DNA of 39,399 nt from Dimorphilus gyrociliatus (Eukaryota > Animalia > Annelida): positions 1-39,399 of the forward strand of contig CAJFCJ010000192.1 in assembly GCA_904063045.1 (NCBI GenBank). Direction: 5' to 3'. Each line of letters opens with the position of its first letter. Position 1 is the stretch's first letter. The translations under genes and the position numbers were made by a program. The notes under the pieces were generated by a model that was not told the origin of the DNA, did no database searches, and worked only from the letters and a program-made list of their open reading frames with translations. Shown piece after piece: positions 186 through 35,781 of the stretch.

Positions 186-1121
186 TTATAGGAAATAGTA
201 AACTCCTTTAAAGTAGTTAACTAACAAGAATGAGTTTTTCTTTACCTTTACGTTGTAATTCTTTTTTAATCCGGTCCCGTAGTTTTTCATATCCAAATAA
301 AGTATGATAGCTGCAGAAATATGTACACAACATACATAAGAAATAGTCAACCAAAAAAATACTAGCCTTATCGGGACAGTTTGATTAACAATCAATATAG
401 ATAATAAATACAAAATTAAACATAGGTTAATGACAGTAATAATTAAAGTAATTCTGCTATAAATAATTTTTTCTTTGTTTATATTAGCTCTTAGGAAAAG
501 AAAAGACGTAATATAATTTATACAGATTACTATTCGTAAAATAGTTTCCTGCTTAGTTTTAAAGTTAGATGTAAAAATAGATCCAAAGGTCGAAACACCT
601 ATTTGTAAGAAAATATCACGTATTATATACGTATTTATCCTAATTCTATATGCTTCTAAATTATAACTAATTCACTTACTTATCATATAAAAATTTTGTC
701 CTATTCTTCTATATAAGTCCCAATTGTATTCTGCGTCTTTTCCATGAATAAAACTATAAACTGACACATAATCATACAACTTTATAGGAACTTGGAAGAA
801 GAAGAACATTGAAGTAAACCCTGGTATTTTATCGTTTTGTAAAAATTCTAAAATTATGTATAATAAAAATAAGTTGTTAAAGATCGTTAAATATAAATAT
901 GCTCTTAGATAGCTTATTCGTTTAGTAAATATTCCAATCATTATCCATGAAGGTAAATAGATCAGGCTCAGCATATAATCAATACTTATGAACTGAAAAT
1001 TTGGAATTATCATGTCTTTAAACACTCTCCCAAAATAAAGACCAAGTACAGTTAAGTAGAATTGAGCCATATTAGATATAAAAATTGAAGTAATCATAGA
1101 GTTTTCAGCTCTTATAATCAT
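186..1121 (-). CDS. Multi-pass membrane protein, UPF0658-like; two exons (1121-680, 655-186), 303 aa after splicing
   Basis: ORFs 672..1121 and 186..413 are in one frame, open from 655 to 186, and the only stop (TGA 672-674) lies inside a 24-nt GTAAGT..TAATTTAG intron. Spliced junction reads W..Y.RIG...KAY.IR; C-terminus has KNYGTGLK, like the NFGKGLK end I recall for fungal UPF0658 proteins. Confidence 0.8.
656..679 (-). other. Spliceosomal intron, 24 nt, phase 1
   Basis: GTAAGTGAATTAGTTATAATTTAG: microsporidian 5' site GTAAGT, TAAT branch motif close to the 3' AG. Removal gives A|AA (Lys) and removes the stop. Confidence 0.85.
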
Positions 1122-1257
1122 TTTAAATACAATTAGCTTTAAATTTTAAATAAATTAAAGAAGTTCTAAAAAAGAGTCTAGTATCTAAAACACGTGTTTC
1201 CTTTGATATATTAAAAATTAGCAGTTTGTTTTTAGTATGATATTTCTAAATATTTAT

Positions 1258-2391
1258 TGTTAGATCGAATAACATACCCCTCGACGAATAAACGTTCCTT
1301 TAATTCCTATTAATTTACCATAAAATTTACTTTTTTTATTATTTTTAACCCCTATTGCAATGTTTTGGTAAGGACGAATAAGCGTCCCTACCAAAATAGC
1401 ACAAGTAGCTTAGGGTGGGGATAGGTAAATTAATAGGATTTTTGAGCTTTTTGTCAAGGTTTGACGAATAAGCGTCCCTACCAAAATAGCATAGAAAAAA
1501 TTATATTAATTTAGTATAAATTTTTTTAATAAATATTTAGCTATTAATTTTCTATAATTTTTATAGTTGAACCATCTACTACTCTTTGAGTCATGTGTTC
1601 ATCTTGTATCGTAATAGTATTTCTCGAAACATGAATAATTGTATATATTTCATCATGGTATAAAGATACAAGTGGATGACGTCTTGTACTAACGTTAGAA
1701 TCAAAGTCTTTAGCAATAATACATCTATCACCAATATTAATTTCTCTATCTCCTACAGTTCTCCTATTATATTCTTCCTTATACCTTCTAACATAATCTA
1801 TATAAAAATTTCTTGCATCTTGTAATATTTCAATTCTATTACTGTTCATATCATTAGGATCGACTCCCTCAACAGTACAAATGGCTTAAAACTTGTTGCA
1901 CTGTGGACTGTATTATTATACTAAATTTATATGAAATTGTAAACTAAGACAGAAATAATCGTATGATAAAGAATCTTAGTTTTTAATTTTTACCAAAAAA
2001 GTTGCAGAATAATTTTTTTAAAAACTACAATTAAATATGAATAAATGTATATTACAGATGAAAAATAGTAAATTGATCTTGTTACAAAACAATAATAAGA
2101 ATTAATAGCTAAATATTTATTAAAAAATTTATACTAAATTAATATAATTTTTTCTATGCTATTTTGGTAGGGACGCTTATTCGTCAAACCTTGACAAAAA
2201 GCTCAAAAATCCTATTAATTTACCTATCCCCACCCTAAGCTACTTGTGCTATTTTGGTAGGGACGCTTATTCGTCCTTACCAAAACATTGCAATAGGGGT
2301 TAAAAATAATAAAAAAAAGTAAATTTTATGGTAAATTAATAGGAATTAAAGGAACGTTTATTCGTCGAGGGGTATGTTATTCGACCCAACA
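1258..2391 (-). mobile_element. Non-autonomous Ginger-like (integrase-type DDE) DNA transposon with ~292-bp TIRs
   Basis: Near-perfect inverted repeats 1258-1549 and 2100-2391, TGT...ACA termini, 5-bp TSD TTTAT (1253-1257, 2392-2396). The interior retains an integrase C-terminal remnant. Confidence 0.85.
1544..1915 (-). pseudogene. C-terminal fragment of a retroviral-integrase-like transposase
   Basis: YNNTVHSATSFKPF (integrase YN..HS.T...PF motif), a 1-nt frameshift, then the 101-aa ORF with IGDRCIIAKDFDSN..TRR. The catalytic N-terminal part is absent. Confidence 0.7.
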
Positions 2392-2850
2392 TTTATTTTA
2401 TAAAAATATAAATTTATTGAGATCTATATGGGAATTTTTATTTAATTAATCCTAAATTAGAATCTAAAATCTATATTTATGGTAGAAACATTCTAATTAT
2501 AAGATAACTTCTTTGTTAAATTTAATGAATTAGAAAAAGCTATTAAAGTTAGTTTTTATAAATTTAAATATTTATAGATATCTTTAATATAACCTTTTAA
2601 TCTAAACATGAATCGAATTACAGTGTATTATAAGAACCATATACTTTTTATGTTAAAATTTAATAAAAATCTAACTTTTTACTAAAATATTTATTTAATA
2701 TTCTTCTTATAATAAATATAAAATTTCATAAAGTTTAATTGCCTAAAAATAGTAATATTTGCTAAAGATACTTAAAATCTAGTAAGAAGCCGTTTTTGAT
2801 AAACTTTTCAATTAAATAATTAAAAGTATTGATTTATTATTTGTATTTGA

Positions 2851-3950
2851 TTATAAAGGAAAATCTGGATCAACGTTATCTTTATAACTCTTAAATCCAC
2901 CTTCTATTACAAAACATTCATAACCTTTATTAGTTAATAAATTAGCAGCTGTAATAGCTGATATTCCTTTATTACATAAAACAGCAATTTTCTTATCCAT
3001 TTCTAATGTTATTGGTTCATTTTTAAGTATTTCTAGATGAATATTTATAGATTCATTGATAGAGATTATTTCATATTCTTTTTTATCTCTTATGTCTATT
3101 ATTATATACTTATCCTTATTTTTAATTAAAGAACACCAATCAATATATTGAGTATTATTGGGTTTAGAGTTATTCAAAGAACATCTAATACTTTCGACTT
3201 TAATAGGTAGCTTTTGGCATGCAATACAACTTTCTTGTTTATCTCTAATTTTAATATTTATAAATGAAGATCTTAATCCATCAAAAAGCAAGAGTTGAGG
3301 TTTATAATTACCTATTAAAAATTTTATTGCCTCAACTGCTTGTATACTTCCTATAAGACCACACATAGGACCAATTATGCCTGTTTGATCACAATTCATA
3401 GTTTTATTCTTAACTCTGGGTATAAACATCTATAACAGCCACTTTCCTTAGTAAAAACGTAAACATGCCCTTCCCACTTTTGAACAGAAGCACAAATAAA
3501 GTTAACATCGTAAAATCTACAGCTATCGTTTAACAAGTACCTTGTAATAATATTATCAGTACAATCAAGAACAAGATCATAATTTTTGATAATATCTATT
3601 GTTTTATGGGAAAACATATAATTTATTGCTCGTATTTCTATTTTAGAATTCATTGTTTTTAAAAGTGAAACTAAGCTTACAGCTTTACTTTCGCCTATAT
3701 TATTTTCATTGTAGCATATTTGTCTCTGCAAATTATGTTCTTCTACTAAATCATGATCTATTATATCTATTGAGCCAATTCCTGCCATTGTTAAATACAT
3801 AGAAACCGGTGCTCCTAAACCGCCAGCACCAACTATCAAAATTTTTGAGTTTAAAAGTTTTCTTTGGTTTAAACTTCCGAAATTGTCAATAATAATTTGA
3901 CGTGAATATTTTTTTATTTCTTGGTTATTTAAAATAGAATTAAAGTCCAT
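2851..3950 (-). CDS. UBA4: Uba4/MOCS3 (ThiF adenylyltransferase plus rhodanese), split by a 1-nt frameshift near 3400
   Basis: YSRQI, GAGGLG, DHDLVEEHNLQRQ, DCTDN and CYRCLYP in 3396..3950; NCDQTGIIG and a rhodanese domain (IIDIR, CNKG, GGFKSY) in 2851..3429. Confidence 0.9.
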
Positions 3951-4141
3951 TTATGGGGCTCATAAAATAAATTTAAATTTAATTCTATGTATAAATTAGT
4001 TTAATTTATGAAAATATTATTAACGTGAGTTGATACTTTTAAATTTAAAATGATTTTAATTTTTAATTTTATAGATTTACTGCTAAAGGAAGAAAAATAC
4101 AAATTTAAAAAGATTTTATTCAGAAAAAATTTAACCCTTCA

Positions 4142-4339
4142 ATGCCAAAGAGAAAAAACACATCTAACCATAATCGATCCAGAAAAGATCATAGAAGGCC
4201 AATAAGAAAGCCTGGTAAAAATGCACCTTTAAAATTTAGAGGAGGAGACCTCAAAGAAATAAGAAATACCATATATTCTCAAAAATATAATGGAATAGGA
4301 AGAATGGCATATGAAGAAAAGAATGGAGTTCAAGAATGA
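4142..4339 (+). CDS. RPL29: 60S ribosomal protein L29 (eL29)
   Basis: MPKRKNTSNHNRSRKDHR matches the eL29 N-terminus; AAATTT and CCC motifs precede the ATG. Confidence 0.88.
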   Translation: MPKRKNTSNHNRSRKDHRRPIRKPGKNAPLKFRGGDLKEIRNTIYSQKYNGIGRMAYEEKNGVQE

Positions 4340-4544
4340 CTTTAATTAAAATATAAGTTTTTAAAAACACTTTTTTGATACCACAAGTTGTAGCACCTTA
4401 GAGTTTCCTATAAGAATTACTTAAACAAGTAATATTAATTTTTATATCATAAGTTATCACTTCATTTTTCAATTCTTATATTTTAATTATGGATTATTTT
4501 TATATCATGAGTTATTACTTCTAATATAAATTTTCTATTATAAA

Positions 4545-6383
4545 TCAAATTTTTTCAAGTAAAACCAAATTATTTGGTAATTTTTCAAAAAAGTCAAAAT
4601 AAATAAAAGTCTTTCTTTTTATGATTTTATACCTTTTTGATATTAAGTCTTCATATAAAATATAATTTCTTTCATGCATAACAATCAAATCAGATTTTAA
4701 TTTTTTAAATTTTTTTTTAAATGCACGAAAATACTTATCAGAGGTTAAAACTTTAACTTTTCTATCATTTTCTGTTATATATTCTCCTAGTATTCTTAAT
4801 AAAATGTTTTTTAGTTTTTTTTTGTTAAAAACATTTTTTAGTTCAAAAAAATTTAATTTATTTGTTTTTTTTAGTAAATTCAATAATTTATTTTTTAAAC
4901 TGTTTATGCAAATATTTTCTTTTCTTATATCATAAATTTTTGGGTTTTCTATTTTTTCGTAAATATCTGGATTATTATGTAAAAATTTTATACTTGGTTT
5001 TGTTAAAAATGAATAACATGGAAGAGAATAAGAAGTTACACAAAAAAATATATTTTTTTCTTCATTTTTTATATTATACAAAATGTTATAATTTTGATGT
5101 GAATATCCTATAAAAATAGATATAAATAAAACTAGGGAGTTAATTAGAAATATATTCTTTGTTAGATATTTACTACTGATTATGTTTATGAATGGTATTA
5201 TAGGTAATAAAAATCTCATTTCTTTATGTGCTATTAAAGAATAAAATATTATAAATAGTAGGATTGGTAGATATAAGTCTTTTTCTGAGAGAATCTTAAT
5301 TTTTTTATTTTTACTATCTTTTAAGTTTAATTTTGAATTCTTTTTTTCATAAAAATTTTTTTGTGGTGTTTTTTGTTCTTCCCCATTTTTAGTTTTATTT
5401 TTAGCTTTTTCTATTTTTCTTAAAAAAGTAATTTTGTATATTTTTTTAAGAACAGGTGTAAAAATAAGTAGATAATTTAGACCACATAATACAAAGCAAT
5501 ACCAGAAATATACAAAAAATGGAGATTTTCCAAAAAGTTCGCTAACTTTATAATACATATTAACTTTGACAAAATTTAAAGGTGGTATTAAAAGTTCATC
5601 ATATACTAAACTATCAATAATAATCATATATAACAAAACACTAACTGAAAGAATGGCATAGTTTTTTAGAATTTTTAAAATTCCTAATTTAAAAACTATT
5701 TCTATAAAAAAAGGAATTGTTATTACGATCGAAGATGGACGCAAATAAAACATAAAAACAGCCAATAAAAACACTTTTTTTAAACAATTTCTTACTGCAA
5801 AGTTATTTGAATTTCTATTATTTTTTAGAACTTTTGTAAATTCCGTATCGTGGCAATTTTTATTTCTTAAATCAAAAATGGCTTTACTAAAATAGTAAAA
5901 AATAATTATAGAAACACACATTTCGAAAGAATTTATATGTGAACGTGGAGAATACAACCACAATCCATGACTAATTAGTGTATTAATATATACCTTGTTT
6001 CTATTAAATCCATACAAACAACCAGTTTTAACAGTAAATAAATCACAAATAGCAGCTATTATAGCATTAACAATTCTTATAATTGAAAAACAGTTGTTTA
6101 AATAAAAATTAGAATTAAAAAAAATCGATAGATAGTAAACAATAATTGATGGTACATAATAAATCAATGGATAGTTGAATGATCTTATTCCCAGTTGCCA
6201 ATCCCATGTTAATCTACCTTTCCCAAGAATAAAATAGTTGATAGGTTCAATGTTCTGCCAAATTTCATCAGGCTCAAAGATTGTTCTTAAAGAAAAAGCA
6301 TTAATGATTCTAAATAGCATAAAAGTGTAAAAAATAGAAAATTCTCTGTTTTTTATAATTTTTAAAATATTTTGAAATTTCAT
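4545..6383 (-). CDS. GPI10: GPI mannosyltransferase 3 (PIG-B/Gpi10, GT22 family)
   Basis: RTIFEPDEIWQNIEP, TWDWQLGIRS, HKEMRFLLP and many TM segments. First ATG is at 6383; the track's longer start is a TTG inside the repeat array. Confidence 0.85.
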   Translation of the reverse strand: MKFQNILKIIKNREFSIFYTFMLFRIINAFSLRTIFEPDEIWQNIEPINYFILGKGRLTWDWQLGIRSFNYPLIYYVPSIIVYYLSIFFNSNFYLNNCFSIIRIVNAIIAAICDLFTVKTGCLYGFNRNKVYINTLISHGLWLYSPRSHINSFEMCVSIIIFYYFSKAIFDLRNKNCHDTEFTKVLKNNRNSNNFAVRNCLKKVFLLAVFMFYLRPSSIVITIPFFIEIVFKLGILKILKNYAILSVSVLLYMIIIDSLVYDELLIPPLNFVKVNMYYKVSELFGKSPFFVYFWYCFVLCGLNYLLIFTPVLKKIYKITFLRKIEKAKNKTKNGEEQKTPQKNFYEKKNSKLNLKDSKNKKIKILSEKDLYLPILLFIIFYSLIAHKEMRFLLPIIPFINIISSKYLTKNIFLINSLVLFISIFIGYSHQNYNILYNIKNEEKNIFFCVTSYSLPCYSFLTKPSIKFLHNNPDIYEKIENPKIYDIRKENICINSLKNKLLNLLKKTNKLNFFELKNVFNKKKLKNILLRILGEYITENDRKVKVLTSDKYFRAFKKKFKKLKSDLIVMHERNYILYEDLISKRYKIIKRKTFIYFDFFEKLPNNLVLLEKI

Positions 6384-6384
6384 G

Positions 6385-6915
6385 AATTTTATTTTTTTTT
6401 TGTTTAAATTATTTTTGTTTATGCAATCTAGAATTATATTTAACAATTAAAGAATAATTTTAAAAAGTTTTATTTTTTTTTGTTTAAATTATTTTTGTTT
6501 ATGCAATCTAGAATTATATTTAACAATTAAAGAATAATTTTAAAAAGTTTTATTTTTTTTTGTTTAAATTATTTTTGTTTATGCAATCTAGAATTATATT
6601 TAACAATTAAAGAATAATTTTAAAAAGTTTTATTTTTTTTTGTTTAAATTATTTTTGTTTATGCAATCTAGAATTATATTTAACAATTAAAGAATAATTT
6701 TTGAAATTTCATGAATTAATTTTTTTTTTGTTTAAATTATTTTTGTTTATGCAATCTAGAAGTATATTTAACAATTAAAGAATAATTTTTGAAATTTCAT
6801 GAATTTTATTTTTTTTTTGTTTAAATTATTTTTGTTTATGCAATCTAGAAGTATATTTAACAATTAAAGAATAATTTTAAAAAGTTTTATTTTTTTTTGT
6901 TTAAATCAATCTAGA
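6385..6915. repeat. Tandem array, ~7 copies of an 80-89 bp unit
   Basis: atgcaatctaga recurs at 6421, 6501, 6581, 6661, 6749 and 6838, with a truncated last unit near 6907. Confidence 0.95.
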
Positions 6916-7682
6916 ATTATATTCGACCCAACAAAGAATAATGACAAAAAACTGTTAAAATTTATATTACAAATATTTAACGAACCTCTAATTAATAAGT
7001 ATAGTACAAGGTAAAGAAAGTTGAATAAATTTAAAAAAATGCATCTTTTAATTTAAATTATACTCTGTAATGTTAATATAAATAACTTACAACTTTAATT
7101 TATTATGATATATCTTATTAATAATGAAATTTTATAAAAATATCTAAAACTTTAATAAAAATAAATTATTATTAATATTTAATTATTTCTCTACTTAAAC
7201 TTAATTCTCTTGTATATTATTTTTTATTGAATTCATTTAATTATTTTTTTTATTTGACTTTTTTAAAAAAATTATTTTCTTTTTGAAGTTTCAAATGAGA
7301 TGTAATTAATTCTAATAGTTTATATTAATAATATATTATAATAATAATAACAATAATAATTTATTATTTTATATTTTAAATAATATAGTATTCAACAAAA
7401 CAACTAAATTTCTAGCTTAAATAACATAAACAATATATTTTATTAATATAAAAGCCTCATAAATAATATATTTCTTTTATTCTATTACAAAAGCTATTGA
7501 ATTCATATTAGAACACTAGGATTGTATAAAATGTTGATATGAAAATCATTGTTTTAATTTTGATAATAATTTGAGATTTAGATTAGTTTTTGTATTAATT
7601 TTTGATATATGAATATAATTAAAGATGTATTATTGTTTTATATTGATTTTACAGTAAACTTTAGTAAGTCTGTCTATTTTTT

Positions 7683-7815
7683 TTTAAAAAATTAAAAAAT
7701 TAAAAAAATTAAGAAATTAAAAAAATAAAAAATTTAAAAATTTAAAAAAATTCAAAAATTTAAAAAAATTCAAAAAATATAAAAATTAAAAATATAAAAA
7801 TTAAAAATATAAAAA
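7683..7815. repeat. Low-complexity (A5-7 T2-3)n tract
   Basis: Repeated aaaaatt/aaaaaattc units upstream of the SWIB gene. Confidence 0.8.
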
Positions 7816-7902
7816 ATTATTTATTGTTAAAAATAACTCAGAAAGATAGTACTTTAAAAATTAATTCTTACATAAACAATTTTTAAAAAATATCTACCCT
7901 CA

Positions 7903-9030
7903 ATGATAGAAAAATTGATAAAAAAATTAAAAACATTAGATATCAAAATAGATAAAGCTGTACTCAAAGAAAAGTTATTACAGGAAGAACAACACTGCCA
8001 GAGAATATCTTGTAATAAAAGATTAAGAGTTTTTTTATTTTTTGAAAATTTTAAAAATTTAGAAAGCGGTGAAAAAAATTGTTATCTAAGGGTGGACGGT
8101 TTGGTTTTAAATGATTATAAGAATGATATTAATATGAAGTTCTCTGATGTTATATACTCTTTATCAGTTAGGATGGATGATGATGTTTATAGATGGATAA
8201 AAAATGATAAAGAAGATTTAAAATTGGAATCTTTTGAATTGAAATTAAATAAAAGTGTGGAAAAAGTCTTTTTGACTTTTGAACTTGAAAATACCAGGGA
8301 TTGTTATCAAGTCTCTGATAAATTGGCAGTAATTATCAGAGGTTCTATTAATATTCATCCTTTAGAAAATGAAATTGTTGAAAGTAAAACAAATATTTTA
8401 ATACTTACCTGGAAATATATTAAAAATAATAAATTACTTGATAATGAAATAGTAAAATGTGATGAAAAGTTAAAAGATTGCTTTGGTGTTGATAATTTTA
8501 ATATTTTAGAACTAGAAAAATATGTAGATAAACATTTATTCCCTCTTAAACCTATAAGAATAGAAATACCAACCAAGTGCAATGATAAAGAAAATATTAC
8601 AAATTCTAATCAAAATACTGAAAAAGACTCCAATAAGGAAAATAGTAGTGTAGAAAATACTAATGAGTCATCTTCTGATAACTACTATGAAAATTTAGAA
8701 GAGAAAGATGGAAAACTCGTATATAAACGAATATTTGATATTCCAATTATATTAGATGACCTATTTGAGTTTCCTATTTTGTATAACAATAGAAGTATTA
8801 ATGAAATAGAACGTAAGTCTAATCAGTTATTTGATTTAATCTCAAGAATAGATGAGAAAATAGATATTATAGGTGATTATGAGAAAAAACCTATAGATGC
8901 TATAAACAAATGGATTGTAAATGAAAGTGTTAAGACAATAGAAGAAGATATATATATAGGAGATGAGAACTTCTTCTATGATTATGTAATTCAAAATGTT
9001 ATACTAGAACTACTCAAATATTATAAATAA
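7903..9030 (+). CDS. SWIB-domain SWI/SNF subunit (Snf12/Rsc6/BAF60-like)
   Basis: KRLRVFL N-terminal block; SWIB core ILILTWKYIKNNKLLD..IVKCDEKLKDCFG; CCC motif before ATG. Confidence 0.8.
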   Translation: MIEKLIKKLKTLDIKIDKAVLKEKLLQEEQHCQRISCNKRLRVFLFFENFKNLESGEKNCYLRVDGLVLNDYKNDINMKFSDVIYSLSVRMDDDVYRWIKNDKEDLKLESFELKLNKSVEKVFLTFELENTRDCYQVSDKLAVIIRGSINIHPLENEIVESKTNILILTWKYIKNNKLLDNEIVKCDEKLKDCFGVDNFNILELEKYVDKHLFPLKPIRIEIPTKCNDKENITNSNQNTEKDSNKENSSVENTNESSSDNYYENLEEKDGKLVYKRIFDIPIILDDLFEFPILYNNRSINEIERKSNQLFDLISRIDEKIDIIGDYEKKPIDAINKWIVNESVKTIEEDIYIGDENFFYDYVIQNVILELLKYYK

Positions 9031-9156
9031 TTATTATATTCATTAATAAAGTCTTCTATAAACACTTTTTCCTCTAATATTTTCATTTTTAGAAACTTTA
9101 TTTACTTTAAATATACTCTCAATATTAAGAAAAATTGTAAATTCTCAAAAGTTATT

Positions 9157-10995
9157 TTAATTATTTTCTTTAGTTAAAGACAACAGAAGTTCTAAATTGA
9201 GTTCGAAAGCTGAACAAATAAAAGGAACGTTATAATATTTAGTAATTTCTGGATCAACTATACCAAACATTCCAACTATTTGGTTCTTAACAACTACAAA
9301 ACCAGATCTTTCTTTAAAATATACGTTAAAAATGTGACTAGTATTGCTTAATTGGTTGTGTTCCTTTAAAGAATTAAAGTTACGATATTCGAAATCATTT
9401 ATATTTAATCTTGAAAGTAAATGGGATAGAATTCCATGAATTTTATCAAAACAGCTAACTTTATCAGCAATAACACCACATATATTCCTTTGATTATAAG
9501 AATTGTCGATTTGACTGTTTATTTCCTGTATTTTGCTTCTTTTATTTTGATTATTGGTATTTTTTTTAATAACAACATCAGAAATTTCAAAACAGTTTAT
9601 TGGTTGTACATGATGTTGATTATTATAGATAAATTTAAGAATACCAATCATCAAACTAGTAGACATGCTTTCTGTCTCCTTCACCTTAGGATTTGTTACA
9701 TTCACGATTAAATCTTCTACACTTTTTATTTTGTAGTCAGAAAATAGCCTTGTTGATTCGATACCGTTTAATATAGCCAAATTATCTTCTTTCGATACTA
9801 AAGTTAAACTCATAACTTCATTGAAACCAAGAAATGCGCATTCCATACGTGCCTTATCAGTCAAGTTGTTTATACGTAATTTTTTACCACTTGAGTGAAA
9901 TTGGACGGGGGTTCTTTCAAAGTTATCAAAATCATGGGCTATTGATAAATCTTCTAATATGTCTGTTTTATGAATAACATCAGGTCTTAAATAAGGAACA
10001 GTTATACGGATTTGTTCTTTTTTATCAACAATCTCCATCTTTACATCGTACATCATACTAAATAAATAGTCTATATAACAATCTAAAGGTTGTTTTATAT
10101 CTAATTCTTTGTCTATTTCTGCTTTTGTTAAATAAAAAACTTTGTCTTCAAATTTTGGTGTTTTAACAATTCCATTGTTTTGTGGAGACTCAATAGTTGA
10201 TTGATAAACCTCACAATCTGGATTTGAGTGTATTAGAAAGGATACGATTAACTCCAAAGCCAGGTTTATCTTAAATTGGTCATTTCCAGTAGACTCTATT
10301 AACAGACTGGTAGTATTTTCTTCAATTTTAGAATACTCAGAATTAATAACAGGTGGTAAAGAAATCACCTCATCTCTTTTATCTAAAATCATGTCCAAGT
10401 CGTTTTTAATGTATTTAGATAAACGTTTATCACATTTTAATTTATGAATAGTATTCGAATCTTGAGTTGTATTTTCTGTTAATTTAACATTTGAAAGTGC
10501 AAGAGTTTCAAATTCTCTTCCATCGTATGGTTTATGAATGAGAGGAAATTCTATTTTATTGAAATCATGAATTCCAATGGCAATGTATTTTCTATCTCTA
10601 CCTAAATTATAATGTAAAAGTTCCTGAAAATCAATTAAAGTTTGAAGGTTTTCTTTTAAATTGATATTTTTAATAACTACAGCACCTATAAAATTTTTTG
10701 ATTGATTTTTTACTATAAAATTACTTTTATCAGAAATTCTTAAATTTTGAAGTTTTTTGCTAAAATCCTCTTTGTTGTTGCCACCATCCAAGAATGTTCT
10801 TAATGCATGTAAAAGACCATACTTGTTGAATAAGTCATATCTATTTGCAGGCAATTCTATTTTATAATAACTAATACCATCTTCTATAATCTCATCATCA
10901 ATTTCTAAACCAAATCTAAAAAGAAAGTCTTCGATATTATCGATTTCTGTTATATTTTTCCTTAGGTAATCTTTTTCTACTCGTATTGTTGGCAT
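9157..10995 (-). CDS. FRS1: Phenylalanyl-tRNA synthetase beta subunit
   Basis: MPTI start, ELPANRYDL, AIGIHD, LPPVINS, RPDVIHKTDILED. Confidence 0.95.
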   Translation of the reverse strand: MPTIRVEKDYLRKNITEIDNIEDFLFRFGLEIDDEIIEDGISYYKIELPANRYDLFNKYGLLHALRTFLDGGNNKEDFSKKLQNLRISDKSNFIVKNQSKNFIGAVVIKNINLKENLQTLIDFQELLHYNLGRDRKYIAIGIHDFNKIEFPLIHKPYDGREFETLALSNVKLTENTTQDSNTIHKLKCDKRLSKYIKNDLDMILDKRDEVISLPPVINSEYSKIEENTTSLLIESTGNDQFKINLALELIVSFLIHSNPDCEVYQSTIESPQNNGIVKTPKFEDKVFYLTKAEIDKELDIKQPLDCYIDYLFSMMYDVKMEIVDKKEQIRITVPYLRPDVIHKTDILEDLSIAHDFDNFERTPVQFHSSGKKLRINNLTDKARMECAFLGFNEVMSLTLVSKEDNLAILNGIESTRLFSDYKIKSVEDLIVNVTNPKVKETESMSTSLMIGILKFIYNNQHHVQPINCFEISDVVIKKNTNNQNKRSKIQEINSQIDNSYNQRNICGVIADKVSCFDKIHGILSHLLSRLNINDFEYRNFNSLKEHNQLSNTSHIFNVYFKERSGFVVVKNQIVGMFGIVDPEITKYYNVPFICSAFELNLELLLSLTKENN

Positions 10996-11248
10996 TTAGA
11001 AGGGTAAAATTTTTGCTTTACATAAAATTGCTTTATTTGTATAAATATTCAAAAAAATATCTAAAAAATTTCTTATTTAGGTAAAATTAAAAATACGCTT
11101 TTTAAGATAAAATGATAAATAAAAGATTTAATTGGAAATTTAAATTACTAGAAATATAAATGTTAAATTATTAAAAATGTTAAATTGAAAGTAGAAAATA
11201 CAAATTCTAAACAATTAATTTTGTAATAAAAAAACTCGTGAAAAATCG

Positions 11249-12034
11249 TTAAATTAATTTATTCATAAAATAATCTGAAAACAAATTCATGGATAAAGTT
11301 TCTTTATAATTTTTAGGTAATTTTTGATCTAGTGAAAATTTTTCTAATAATTTTTTTTGATCTTCATGAAAGTTATTAAACATTTCATTTATTTCAATAA
11401 AATGTTCTTCTTTTATTATATTTTTTAGATTTTTTCTTAAAAAGAAATAATAATAAAATCCTGTCTTTGTTGGATTCTTTTTCAAAAACAAAAACAAGTT
11501 TTTCGAGGCCTTTATTAATAAAGACTTATCTATATACCTTAACAATGATATAAAACAAAGATAATAATGTTTACAGTACTGAGATTTTAGTCTTTTAAAA
11601 ATGTTCTTTAAAAACAACACAGGATGTTCTAAAGCCACTTTAAACATATAAAACTGCAAAATGGAACATTCACATTTTATAATTTCATCTAAATAACTAA
11701 ATTCTATATCTTTAGGAAGTATTTCAATAATAGAATTGATTGTATTAAAAGTTTGTTTACAGTAAAGTACATCTTCATCATTAATAGGCGTTTCTATCTC
11801 TGAAAATAAAATATTCATATCAAAGTCTTTTTGTTTTTCTAATAATTTTTTAAATTCTACTTTGAAGGATCCATCTAGTATTATTAGCTGAGAGATTACA
11901 AATTTTCTGATTGTTTGTTTTAATTGTTTATCATTAATGATCGATGGTGTTTCTAGAATATCATCTAACGTAAAGCTCTTTTTTTTTACTTTATTCAATA
12001 TTAATAGTTTTTGAGATTTCGTCAAAGATGACAT
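11249..12034 (-). CDS. Hypothetical helical protein, possibly reduced Rrn3-like
   Basis: 261-aa ORF with CCC motif. SILQFYMF...FL...Y...SLLR only weakly recalls Rrn3. Confidence 0.55.
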   Translation of the reverse strand: MSSLTKSQKLLILNKVKKKSFTLDDILETPSIINDKQLKQTIRKFVISQLIILDGSFKVEFKKLLEKQKDFDMNILFSEIETPINDEDVLYCKQTFNTINSIIEILPKDIEFSYLDEIIKCECSILQFYMFKVALEHPVLFLKNIFKRLKSQYCKHYYLCFISLLRYIDKSLLIKASKNLFLFLKKNPTKTGFYYYFFLRKNLKNIIKEEHFIEINEMFNNFHEDQKKLLEKFSLDQKLPKNYKETLSMNLFSDYFMNKLI

Positions 12035-12268
12035 AAGAGGGGTTGGAATAAATTATAATGTTATAAAATAAACCAATATAATATTATTTACATTAGAATA
12101 TTGATAATTATTGTATTTATAAATAAAAGATTAAAAAAGATAATAAATAGACAAATACTAATAAAAGTTCTTTACATTGATATAATAAAAAATATAAATA
12201 AGTAAATTTTTTTTAAATTTAATAAAAAAATAAAATTTAGAGTAAGCCACGTTTATTTCGGGTACAAT

Positions 12269-12514
12269 TTATTCTCTTTGTTTGGTCTTATAAGTTATCT
12301 TTTTACATTCTTGGAGATAATCTAACGTTTCTTCCCCTTTATATATGAAATAATTTAACAGCTCTCCTATATCCTTCATAGCACCTTCAATTCTTTTTCT
12401 TCTTTTTAAAAAATTACGTATAATAATTATTTTCTTATCATTTTCTATTGTTGATGGTAGTTTGTTTTGTAGATTTACTATATAATCTCTACTATCTTTT
12501 ACTTTATTAAAAAA
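12269..12514 (-). CDS. 3' end of an unknown gene, 5' part lost in the N gap
   Basis: Open frame FFNKVKDSRDY...YKTKQRE* running from the gap edge; not in the ORF track. Confidence 0.55.
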   Translation of the reverse strand, partial: FFNKVKDSRDYIVNLQNKLPSTIENDKKIIIIRNFLKRRKRIEGAMKDIGELLNYFIYKGEETLDYLQECKKITYKTKQRE

Positions 12515-13207
12515 TNNNNNNNNNNNNNNNNNNNNNNNNNNNNNNNNNNNNNNNNNNNNNNNNNNNNNNNNNNNNNNNNNNNNNNNNNNNNNNNNNNNNN
12601 NNNNNNNNNNNNNNNNNNNNNNNNNNNNNNNNNNNNNNNNNNNNNNNNNNNNNNNNNNNNNNNNNNNNNNNNNNNNNNNNNNNNNNNNNNNNNNNNNNNN
12701 NNNNNNNNNNNNNNNNNNNNNNNNNNNNNNNNNNNNNNNNNNNNNNNNNNNNNNNNNNNNNNNNNNNNNNNNNNNNNNNNNNNNNNNNNNNNNNNNNNNN
12801 NNNNNNNNNNNNNNNNNNNNNNNNNNNNNNNNNNNNNNNNNNNNNNNNNNNNNNNNNNNNNNNNNNNNNNNNNNNNNNNNNNNNNNNNNNNNNNNNNNNN
12901 NNNNNNNNNNNNNNNNNNNNNNNNNNNNNNNNNNNNNNNNNNNNNNNNNNNNNNNNNNNNNNNNNNNNNNNNNNNNNNNNNNNNNNNNNNNNNNNNNNNN
13001 NNNNNNNNNNNNNNNNNNNNNNNNNNNNNNNNNNNNNNNNNNNNNNNNNNNNNNNNNNNNNNNNNNNNNNNNNNNNNNNNNNNNNNNNNNNNNNNNNNNN
13101 NNNNNNNNNNNNNNNNNNNNNNNTTATTTCCGAAACAGGAAATGCTTTTTCAACCTAAATTTTATAAAGAAGTAAATCAAATATTCTCTAAAGCAAATTT
13201 TACCTAA

Positions 13208-14109
13208 ATGTTATTTTTTAAAAATATAAAAAAAAGTTTATTTATGCAAAATAAAGAAATGCATTCAAAGAAACTACCTTTTAGTAAGAAAAGTAAAACC
13301 ATTTGTTTGTTGTTATTTGGTTTATTTTTAGCTAGATACATAGTTTTAACAGATATTCTAACACGAACAGTCAATGAAACAACAAGAGCAGTGATTTTTA
13401 AGAGTTCTTTTCTTAACACTGCAGAAATACTACTAGTAGGTCAAGCATTATCCGAAAAGAACGTTTTTCAACTAATGTTTCTTTTATTTTCATTTATATT
13501 TACAGTCAGTGGAATTATTTTTATTAATGTTACAAGCAACATACAAGTATTTATTGATGTAATTGCAATATTTTTAGATATATTTATAATTATTACATAC
13601 TGTTTTCTCATTTATTCTATATGGGATAACATTTCATGGTATTACTATGAAAGAATAGGAATATCAATTAAATTGCAAAGTAAGTGAATATTTTTAATTA
13701 AGAAGCTTTTAAATTACGACAGATTTCTAGCGTTCTTTATAGATTTATTTTAAAATCAAACATAGAAACAATTTTTGAAGATTTTGGAAATAACAGAATA
13801 GAAAATAAGTTGTTTGGTTATTTGAAGCTGATATTGTCTGTTCTTTATTACTATGTCTTTAATTTAGGATATGAAAGAGAAAACATGTCTTTAGGAATTT
13901 TTCACATTTTGACATTAGTAGCAAAAATTACAGTCTCTATTATAAATATTGTAATAAAGGTAATTACAAATGAAGAGAGAGGGATTAGAATATTTATAGG
14001 ATTTTTAGAAGGAGAGTCTATCATTTGGGCGGCTATACAAATTGTAGTTATGTTTAATGTAATAAAAAATTATGGAATAAGATTAACTGAGAATATTAAA
14101 GAAGATTAA
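13208..14109 (+). CDS. Multi-pass membrane protein, UPF0658-like, paralog of 186..1121; exons 13208-13679 and 13703-14109, 292 aa
   Basis: Removing the 23-nt intron joins 13208..13687 to the frame of 13810..14109 with no stop. Motifs ALSEKNVFQL, W..Y.RIG...KAF.LR and KNYG. Confidence 0.82.
13680..13702 (+). other. Spliceosomal intron, 23 nt, phase 1
   Basis: GTAAGTGAATATTTTTAATTAAG; removal restores the frame (A|AA Lys). Confidence 0.88.
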
Positions 14110-16733: not shown

Positions 16734-17234
16734 TTATTTAAATTTAGGATGAACATTAAAACTAAGCACATCAGTCTTATATAATCCTATTAATGATCGT
16801 CCTACTTTTGTTGTTATTGAATTCTCTGCCGTATTAACCCAAATACTAATAGAAGCTCCAGTACTTCTAGGTGATAAAATACACCCACTTATGTGAAACC
16901 CATCAATACTTTCTGATACACAAAATTTTAATGTTTCATTCCATAAACTATTTAAATCGTTGAGTGCACTTCCTTTGACTTCGTATGTCCATTTAGATCC
17001 ATTGATATTATTCTTATCACTTACATCTGGTGATATTCCTTCTCTAAAGAAGTATAAATTTGAACTATGTGGCCAGCTGTTAGCTTGTCTACTGTTATCT
17101 ATCACAAAAAACAGTTCTTCGAGTGTTTCTACCTGACATATTTCATATATAGGTGTTCTTGATCTTCTATCTCCACTTTTATCACATTCGAAAGTGTAAC
17201 TCCAAGGTGTAGTAAGTGAATGTGTTTGATTCAT
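16734..17234 (-). CDS. Divergent eIF4E-family protein
   Basis: HSLTTPW, TLEEL, YFFREGISP..D..N..G.KW, ISGCILSPR and ISIW follow the eIF4E pattern. Confidence 0.85.
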   Translation of the reverse strand: MNQTHSLTTPWSYTFECDKSGDRRSRTPIYEICQVETLEELFFVIDNSRQANSWPHSSNLYFFREGISPDVSDKNNINGSKWTYEVKGSALNDLNSLWNETLKFCVSESIDGFHISGCILSPRSTGASISIWVNTAENSITTKVGRSLIGLYKTDVLSFNVHPKFK

Positions 17235-33116: not shown

Positions 33117-34313
33117 ANNNNNNNNNNNNNNNNNNNNNNNNNNNNNNNNNNNNNNNNNNNNNNNNNNNNNNNNNNNNNNNNNNNNNNNNNNNNNNNNNNN
33201 NNNNNNNNNNNNNNNNNNNNNNNNNNNNNNNNNNNNNNNNNNNNNNNNNNNNNNNNNNNNNNNNNNNNNNNNNNNNNNNNNNNNNNNNNNNNNNNNNNNN
33301 NNNNNNNNNNNNNNNNNNNNNNNNNNNNNNNNNNNNNNNNNNNNNNNNNNNNNNNNNNNNNNNNNNNNNNNNNNNNNNNNNNNNNNNNNNNNNNNNNNNN
33401 NNNNNNNNNNNNNNNNNNNNNNNNNNNNNNNNNNNNNNNNNNNNNNNNNNNNNNNNNNNNNNNNNNNNNNNNNNNNNNNNNNNNNNNNATCGTTTTATTA
33501 TAGCCAGCCTTGTAGCGATAATCTCCTTCCGATAGTCCTTATATCTTCCATAAATAACATAAGCGTGTTAACATCTCTAGTTTTAGATGACAAAGTTACT
33601 AACTTCAATTCATTATTGCATGACAACACAATAAGTCATCACAGCTAATATATTACCTTCTTAGTGTCTTATCCTACAATTAAAGCTTAGAATTCAAGCC
33701 AGATGTTTTGGATCAAGCCCAAAATCGTCCCCTCGGTGGGACGAAGTTGGACTTGTGTCTAACTGCAAAAATACAAAAAAACTAAATAATTGAAAAATCA
33801 ACTATTCAAATAAAAAAGAAAATTTTATAATATAGTGCAAAATTGTACATCTTTAAATTCTAGTAGAAAAAATGGAATACTTAAATAAATCTATAGTATG
33901 TCACATCTAAAAACATAAACATTAATGATATAACAAAATAATATAATCAGAAAAATTTTAATAAATATAACTTTGCGTTGCCCCTTCTATAGCAATTATT
34001 AAATATATAACAGTATTTATTTAAAAATTGTCAACACTTTCCTGCTTGTACGCATTTTCTAACCTTAATCTCTTTTTAAGCAATTGTGAAAAGACTAAAC
34101 TGTCTGAATATGTGTGTCGTTTCGGTTTCAAAATTTTCTTTATGATACACTATATCATACAATTATTATACCCCTCACTTATGAAGCAACCTATCTGTGC
34201 TAGATAAGCTAAAGAAGAAAAAAGTTTAAGAGAAATCATTCAATTGTTCTAATATGCCCCTTGTTGTGGTATAAAAAAAGTAGAGGGGGGATTTTGGACT
34301 TGAGTCTGATTTA

Positions 34314-35781
34314 TAGGGGGTTTCTATCATTAACGTCATATATTCATTCAATAACGACATAAGCCAATCATTAACGACATTATTCAATCAATTACGACAA
34401 GACTATTTTTTGGGAGGTACTTATTCAATCATTAACGACATAAGTCATTCTTTAACGACAGTATTCTATCAATAACGACATAAGCCAATCAATTACGTCA
34501 CTGTGTTTAAAATAATAAAATTCATTAAAATAGTTTATTCTAAAATTATTTCTCCATTTACCGCTTGAATCACATAAGTTTTCATTCTTCTAAAAAATCC
34601 AGCACAGTCTTCAATAGTAATAGCCTCAAATGATGTTCGTATGAGAGTCCTTAGTTCAGGATCATTTGTTGCAGCTCCTCTACGAACAGCATTTTTCCAC
34701 TTCGAGAAAACGTTCTCAATTGGATTTAGAAAGGGTGAATATGGAGGTAAATACACCAATTTTAAGGAGAGTTCTTCAGCCATATCCTTCATTTGAACAT
34801 AGTGGTGGATTCTAGCGTTATCCAGCACAAAGTAAGGGTCAACGATGCCCTTATCAGTGCAAATTTGAGACAAGGTCAAAATAAACTCTTTGAAAATCTC
34901 TCAATTTACGGCACCATCTGTTATATGATGATGGATCATTTCATTTCAAGACATTGCCGCGATAACAGAAACATTTCTGCTCCGGACTTGAGGAACAGTT
35001 ACGTGAGCAGGAGTTCCACGAATAGATCGTCCGAATCGAACTCTGTAGAAACATTATAGCCAACCTCATCTAAAAACACAATTCGGCCTTCTCCTACCTC
35101 AAAGAGTAACCTCTGAAAGTCTATCCGTATTGTTTCCTCAGCTCAATGATTCTTTCAGAATTTCTTCGTTCAGGTACTACTTGAAGAGTCTTTAAAGTAT
35201 AATGAAAACCTCTCAAGCATCGATTAATGGTACTTTCGCTAATATAAATACCTAACTCTATATTTACTCGAGCCTTGAGAGCACTTAAAGTGAGGGTTGC
35301 GTCGTCATCAACCCAGGATCTAATTTGTTCCTTTTGTTGATCTGTTAGCAAAGTCCTCCTATCTCCACCACGCTTCAGGCTATGAGTTCTATTTTCCTTT
35401 ATACACGTAGCTATGATTGTAGCAACGGTACTTCTCGGAAGACCTACAGCTCTTGCTATTTCCGTCTTGCTCATCGATGTTCTAGCATGGCTCATAATAA
35501 GAGCTCTTGTATCATTATTTATTGAACGTCTTCTTTTTTTATTGGTATTTTGATTTTCATCCGACATAGGGTGCAAATTTTTTAAAAAAGAAATCGGCGT
35601 AATTGATTGGCTTATGTCGTTATTGATAGAATACTGTCGTTAAAGAATGACTTATGTCGTTAATGATTGAATAAATACCCAGAAAAAACATAGTTTTGTC
35701 GTAATTGATTGAGTAATATCGTTAATGATTGGCTTATGTCGTTATTGAATGAATATTGTCGTTAATGATAGAAACCCCCTA
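34314..35781 (-). mobile_element. IS630-Tc1-mariner element (DD34E), full length, inactivated
   Basis: 184-bp TIRs (34314-34497, 35598-35781) flanked by TA (exact end ambiguous by 2 nt). HTH ORF, then FLDEVG ... DNARIH ... YSPFLNPIE with 34 residues between D and E. Three stops and one frameshift. Confidence 0.95.

Follow-up and report, generated by a model that had tools for sequence, protein, structure and literature searches.

Two divergent genes for predicted membrane proteins share the position of a putative short intron on a contig of probable microsporidian origin

Contig CAJFCJ010000192.1 of the Dimorphilus gyrociliatus assembly GCA_904063045.1 (39,399 nucleotides, analysed over its full length and called the window below) contains two genes, here named gene A and gene B, each of which is interrupted by a candidate short intron (Table 1). 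The interruption follows the first base of a lysine codon, and the codon that it splits in phase 1 is AAA in both genes. Specifically, exon 1 of gene A ends with YNWDLYRRIGQNFYMI and that of gene B with ISWYYYERIGISIKLQ, followed in each case by a single A, as read from the sequence and its translation. Beyond the interruption, exon 2 resumes with AA and then reads AYRIR in gene A and AFKLR in gene B. Both introns begin with GTAAGTGAAT, contain TAATT and end in AG. Towards their ends the two proteins carry the tetrapeptide KNYG, encoded at 276..287 in gene A (exon-2 residues 123–126) and at 14065..14076 in gene B (exon-2 residues 121–124). The common lysine codon, its phase, the GTAAGTGAAT start and the KNYG motif had all been reported in an earlier sequence-only reading of the window, and sequence and translations confirm them.

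Table 1. Coordinates of the two interrupted genes and of the assembly gap between them (window positions).
Feature	Position	Strand	Remarks
Gene A, whole	186..1121	minus	two long open frames around a short break
Gene A exon 1	680..1121	minus	ATG at 1119..1121; 147 codons and the first base of the Lys codon
Gene A intron	656..679	minus	24 nt; GTAAGT 5′ site, TAATT, one base, AG
Gene A exon 2	186..655	minus	AA finishes the Lys codon; 155 codons; TAA at 186..188
Gene B, whole	13208..14109	plus	two long open frames around a short break
Gene B exon 1	13208..13679	plus	157 codons and one base; in-frame TAA at 13205..13207 abuts the ATG
Gene B intron	13680..13702	plus	23 nt; GTAAGT 5′ site, TAATT, one base, AG
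Gene B exon 2	13703..14109	plus	AA finishes the Lys codon; 134 codons; TAA at 14107..14109
Assembly gap (608 N)	12516..13123		between genes A and B; touches neither coding sequence

Hydropathy places about four hydrophobic helices in exon 1 of gene A, which has WDLYRRIG at its end (699..722), while four helices were modelled in exon 1 of gene B, with WYYYERIG at its end (13637..13660). Joined across the intron, the predicted proteins would measure 303 residues for gene A (147+1+155) and 292 residues for gene B (157+1+134), and hydropathy together with models of the exon pieces gives each of them about eight membrane helices, which makes both of them multi-pass membrane proteins by prediction. 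The gap between the genes ends 84 bases 5′ of the gene B ATG and affects just the 12-kb linkage of the two genes, which depends on the scaffold join. To the left of this gap, a minus-strand open frame (12269..12515) seems to enter it, and an unrelated gene may be cut there. Within gene A, the two halves (681..1121 and 189..653, minus strand) show 26% identity over 93 residues with a shuffle z of about 5, and a composition-adjusted BLASTP E of 0.06. This hints at a possible internal duplication of four plus four helices with the intron between the repeats; in gene B, no half-versus-half similarity signal of this kind was found.

The two interruptions agree closely with the pattern GTA[AG]GT...TAATT N0-4 AG that Fig. 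S2 of PMC3486916 gives for introns of Trachipleistophora hominis. The branch-type motif and the acceptor are set one base apart, as TAATT-T-AG in gene A and TAATT-A-AG in gene B, and only 9–10 bases separate the 5′ site from the branch motif. When the window was scanned with GTAAGT..TAATT N0-4 AG, the pattern fitted only loci A and B, with 0.83 matches expected (three overlapping matches are listed at the two loci, owing to alternative AG ends). The window has 17 GTAAGT sites, and only those of genes A and B link two open frames, each 60 codons or longer, over a frame that is closed; decoy hexamers of the same composition did so at 12 of 1899 sites (about 0.6%), and at least 4 of these 12 sites lie at loci A and B. 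The lengths of 24 and 23 nt also fall inside the range of 22–76 nt recorded for introns of Encephalitozoon cuniculi (PMC3629993). On these sequence features, the assignment of both pieces to the canonical form of a short microsporidian intron is supported.

Taking out the 24 or 23 nt restores one frame in each gene, and the frame is closed if they are retained. Unspliced, both genes read AGT AAG TGA and thus meet a stop three codons into the intron, GTAAGTGA read in phase 1 being an immediate in-frame TGA in gene A as in gene B. Downstream of it, frames of 155 codons (A) and 134 codons (B) remain open where about 13 stops would be expected in DNA of 25% GC, and the chance of so long an open frame is 2e-6 for gene A and 1e-5 for gene B. 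The first ATG comes no earlier than residue 122 in exon 2 of gene A and is residue 61 in exon 2 of gene B. With no ATG near their start, the exon-2 frames are not separate genes; that they are kept open means that they are translated, and exon 1 is the only way into them. Both genes further show a tandem acceptor, AGAAG, with the second AG 3 nt on (653..655 on the minus strand and 13703..13705 on the plus strand). Its use would give introns of 27 nt (A) and 26 nt (B), keeping the frame and replacing Lys-Ala by Thr.

One might read the breaks instead as damage (a nonsense mutation in gene A and a frameshift in gene B) or as assembly errors, in genes that are decaying or mis-assembled. The 24 nt of intron A are in frame and a single TGA closes the frame there, and a Uba4-like gene of the same window has what looks like a plain frameshift, as this account would have it. 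However, it calls for two independent lesions at a homologous codon, each of them making GTAAGT...TAATT-N-AG, and all other frames of the two genes are intact. Damage is accordingly the explanation that we find hardest to credit.

Whether the two proteins are related at all is less obvious from standard comparison. Composition-adjusted BLASTP of A versus B gave an E of only 0.29 for exon 1 and 0.028 for exon 2, and for exon 1 the likeness does not extend over the whole: no significant similarity was found between the two first exons outside their last ~20 residues, which hold W..Y.RIG. Moreover, the pair was picked by a reader after the resemblance had been seen. These points would suit the view that A and B are unrelated membrane proteins whose likeness at the junction reflects chance and hydrophobic composition. 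The exon-2 halves, in contrast, can be aligned from end to end at 21% identity, with a global z that is 4.2 when full shuffles are the reference and 3.4 when local composition is kept in the shuffles. Searched against the window in six frames, each exon 2 finds its best or near-best match, itself aside, in the other. They also share a motif at their ends, KNYG..L..N, which is 2 residues out of register, so that KNYG lies nearly equidistant from the junction in both proteins.

A junction-anchored alignment, in which the intron itself fixes the register, offers a stricter comparison. Over 30 residues on each side it scored 49, against shuffle means of –4 and 4 (the shuffles including some that keep local composition), corresponding to z values of 5.3 and 4.2; the score was reached by 1 and 0 of 2000 shuffles. 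Even with no free register, the alignment thus outscores 1999 or more of the 2000 shuffles, also where local composition is kept. At 171 virtual junctions placed elsewhere in gene B the top score was 10, compared with 49 at the real junction, and pieces of a control membrane protein from the same window yielded no comparable scores against A or B. Chance likeness of unrelated proteins is therefore very improbable. The distant relationship that the sequence-only reading proposed is borne out in that the register is statistically secure at the junction and through exon 2, and the intron lies at a homologous codon and phase in both genes. That reading was also right about the low overall protein similarity, since the case for homology is made by exon 2 and the surroundings of the junction. 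It had allowed that its claim would fall if the proteins did not align outside the junction; on this point the outcome is divided, in that exon 2 does align and exon 1, beyond its last ~20 residues, does not.

At the DNA level, the exon sequences flanking the two introns are identical at 29/60 and 24/60 positions (40–48%), where random registers give 18.6 ± 3.6, and the codons used for the conserved Ala, the conserved Arg and 3 of the 4 KNYG residues differ between the genes. Such divergence and codon differences fit an old split under protein-level selection. Recent gene conversion was considered as a source of the common intron and rejected as unlikely, given that the flanks are only 40–48% identical and the conserved Ala and Arg codons differ.

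The same position could also have been reached if introns were gained independently at an A|AAG-type site after divergence, for example by intron transposition. Introns A and B do have 10 5′ bases in common and sit in a similar exon context (A before, AAGC after). Yet they share codon, phase and aligned column, with the register fixed by flanking protein motifs; almost all of the common intron bases are required splice signals; and no further copy of such an element was found in the window. Independent gain would in addition be a rare event in a lineage that is noted chiefly for losing introns, and we consider it very improbable.

The source of the window bears on what may be expected of such genes. 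GC content is 22–27% over most of its length, and it is dense with intact eukaryotic housekeeping genes. Its uS15 protein finds its best match, at 152 bits, in the chain of 7qca/8p5d/8p60, which we take to be Spraguea lophii ribosomes; the next chains reach at most 132 bits. Three other chains, taken as microsporidian and presumably those of Paranosema locustae, Encephalitozoon cuniculi and Vairimorpha necatrix, give 91–127 bits. For PheRS-beta, identity to the nearest relatives found is 34% (a Logan contig), 31% (Cucumispora dikerogammari) and 30% (Gurleya vavrai), and the 10-kb flanks of these three loci contained no similar protein, no W..Y.RIG and no comparable split gene, a result that carries little weight at 30–34% PheRS-beta identity. 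A much closer sequence came from Joint Genome Institute (JGI) sample 3300019033, where a cDNA-like contig of 1865 bases has 98.3% DNA identity to the PheRS-beta gene of the window (9142..11000). This contig opens with a template-switch-like ACATGGGG, five bases ahead of the ATG, and runs to 15 bases past the stop. The microsporidian of the window or a sister of it, with very short untranslated regions, is therefore present in another marine sample. Taken from these comparisons, the window appears to be DNA of a live, very divergent, undescribed microsporidian. Because this source is so divergent, the lack of homologs for fast-evolving membrane proteins is unsurprising.

We favour, at roughly three chances in four, the reading that A and B descend from an old gene duplication and that both owe the canonical short microsporidian intron in their shared codon to the ancestor. 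Their ancestor would have been a lineage-restricted multi-pass membrane protein, with four helices before the break and four after it, in an undescribed, very AT-rich marine microsporidian. The ancestral gene would already have had a short spliceosomal intron in phase 1 of the Lys codon, placed in the loop after helix 4 and just behind the W..Y.RIG motif. A duplication at the DNA level would then have copied gene and intron together, after which both copies would have kept the intron as identity between the proteins fell to about 21%. Its presence at the time of the gene duplication is the simplest account of an intron at the same codon in both genes. Splicing at GTAAGT / TAATT-N-AG, which we infer for both genes, would make single proteins of 303 (A) and 292 (B) residues from the halves, and unspliced RNA could at most give the four-helix N-terminal half. 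The sequence-only reading went further and called the intron functionally retained. We find no support for this, as duplication at the DNA level is enough to give paralogs an intron at one position, with no function required.

Several observations count against common inheritance of a spliced intron, in addition to the dissimilar first exons. No third family member that could back the A/B alignment was found in the searches made. Scans of the JGI contig collection, which holds the cDNA-like PheRS-beta contig, found no copy of either gene, and an exact look-up of the 149- and 159-residue products of the unspliced open reading frames (ORFs) found none on record. Furthermore, because T. hominis introns start GTAAGTG (among those shown in the supplement of PMC3486916), most of the common 10-mer is splice-site consensus. 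We accordingly rejected the shared 10-mer as evidence by itself, both for this consensus in a relative and for a third exact GTAAGTGAAT at 17212..17221 on the plus strand, antisense in an eIF4E-like gene (16734..17234, minus strand), which is a chance occurrence. Finally, short introns of E. cuniculi are on average spliced in fewer than 20% of transcripts (PMC6349667), and in S. lophii, the presumed species of the top uS15 match, splicing went undetected for 6 of 8 short introns predicted by motif (PMC3749934).

The last two findings, like the missing JGI copies, would sit well with intron-like pieces that are rarely or never spliced, in which case only the four-helix N-terminal halves would be made and the downstream frames would be relics or otherwise used. 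In the unspliced S. lophii cases, however, an in-frame read-through is possible, whereas the introns of A and B do not allow it, and yet the downstream frames are maintained. Both of these stay open, over 134–155 codons at 25% GC, despite the number of stops expected there, and they are conserved between A and B at the protein level with different codons. Protein-level conservation of exon 2 needs translation and hence joining to exon 1. Absence of splicing is on these grounds unlikely, and inheritance of a spliced intron by two old paralogs remains our preferred reading.

The protein family to which A and B belong was approached with the separate exon pieces as queries in all searches, scans and folds. 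None of the four pieces matched in Pfam, where DUF7789 was unlisted even at E up to 10, and the exon pieces accordingly stay below the gathering threshold of PF25044 (DUF7789). A phmmer search with exon 1 of gene A against 1.84 billion representatives returned 0 matches, as did word-seeded searches with exon 1 of gene B and with the exon-2 alignment, which covered lengths of 0.55–1.75 times the query and thus shut out proteins of ~300 residues. No relative of B exon 1 or of A exon 2 turned up among the contigs of the JGI collection. AlphaFold2 modelled four long helices in each of A exon 2 and B exon 1, with a predicted local distance difference test (pLDDT) of 46 and 65, respectively. Searches of the Atlas and PDB fold collections with the exon-piece models found none above a template modelling (TM) score of 0.5 or below E 1, and PDB profile searches with the exon pieces gave nothing significant. 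The sequence-only reading had placed both proteins in a UPF0658-like family and proposed a hidden Markov model (HMM) search as a check; with Pfam, phmmer and word-seeded searches of the exon pieces empty, that placement is not supported. UPF0658 and DUF7789 proteins do resemble A and B in being multi-pass membrane proteins of roughly equal size; they differ in that no exon piece matches the DUF7789 HMM, and nothing in the analysis ties UPF0658 to DUF7789.

A language-model feature search with exon 1 of gene B scored 0.93 to a cluster of mostly microsporidian hypothetical proteins of 150 residues. It further scored 0.86–0.87 to clusters in which 14–21% of the members carry PF25044 DUF7789, one of these DUF7789-carrying clusters being mostly microsporidian with proteins of 285 residues. 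A DUF7789 link of gene B may be considered a weak lead, and the cluster sizes of 150 and 285 residues, which equal one exon-1 ORF and one full-length protein, are suggestive. They might in turn indicate that the intron is an old, family-wide trait of a DUF7789-related microsporidian family, with the hypothetical proteins of ~150 residues being unspliced first exons and the TGA from GTAAGTGA serving as a splicing switch between half and full protein. We regard this extended scenario as doubtful.

Elsewhere in the window, a Uba4/MOCS3-like gene with ThiF/MoeB and rhodanese parts (2851..3950, minus strand) consists of two overlapping ORFs with a break near 3396..3429. The frame shifts there between CYRCLYPE and NCDQTGIIGP, with no intron-like signal, and the break looks like a frameshift or an assembly error. 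At 34535..35576 (minus strand), a stretch of raised GC (34%) holds two ORFs that look like a Tc1/mariner-type transposase, one of them reading PYSPFLNPIENVFSKWK. A second assembly gap spans 33118..33488.

Compared with the short microsporidian introns already known, introns A and B are alike in their GT-AG ends, the GTAAGT(G) start, the TAATT one base before AG and the length of 23–24 nt. E. cuniculi likewise offers earlier examples of introns in the middle of non-ribosomal genes (Lee et al. 2010, summarised in PMC6349667). What sets A and B apart is that their introns lie in two divergent orphan membrane paralogs, at the same codon and with the phase-1 GTAAGTGA stop in both. A second comparison is with the long conserved introns of the poly(A)-binding and S23 genes, which Whelan et al. 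2018 (PMC6349667) describe as about three times longer (76 nt for one of them in E. cuniculi) and as having a stem-loop, an extended branch point and an internal region that is conserved. Introns A and B resemble these in being kept in unrelated or duplicated genes amid intron loss, and in both cases one may ask whether a function keeps them there. In contrast to the long class, to which they do not belong, their 23–24 nt leave no room for an internal element.

The gain in knowledge is modest, in that the intron type is known, paralogs would by default be expected to have their intron at one position, and splicing is predicted only. Overall, this is a tidy but fairly ordinary finding, useful for getting the gene models right and as one more data point on how introns persist. 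As to the gene models, without the introns each gene would appear as a truncated protein of ~150 residues and an orphan frame. As to persistence, nearly all introns of microsporidia have been lost, which prompts the question of why a few survive. Retention of a mid-gene intron at one codon in two paralogs at ~21% identity would mean either that loss is slow enough for the intron to outlast the divergence of the proteins, or that the intron is useful.

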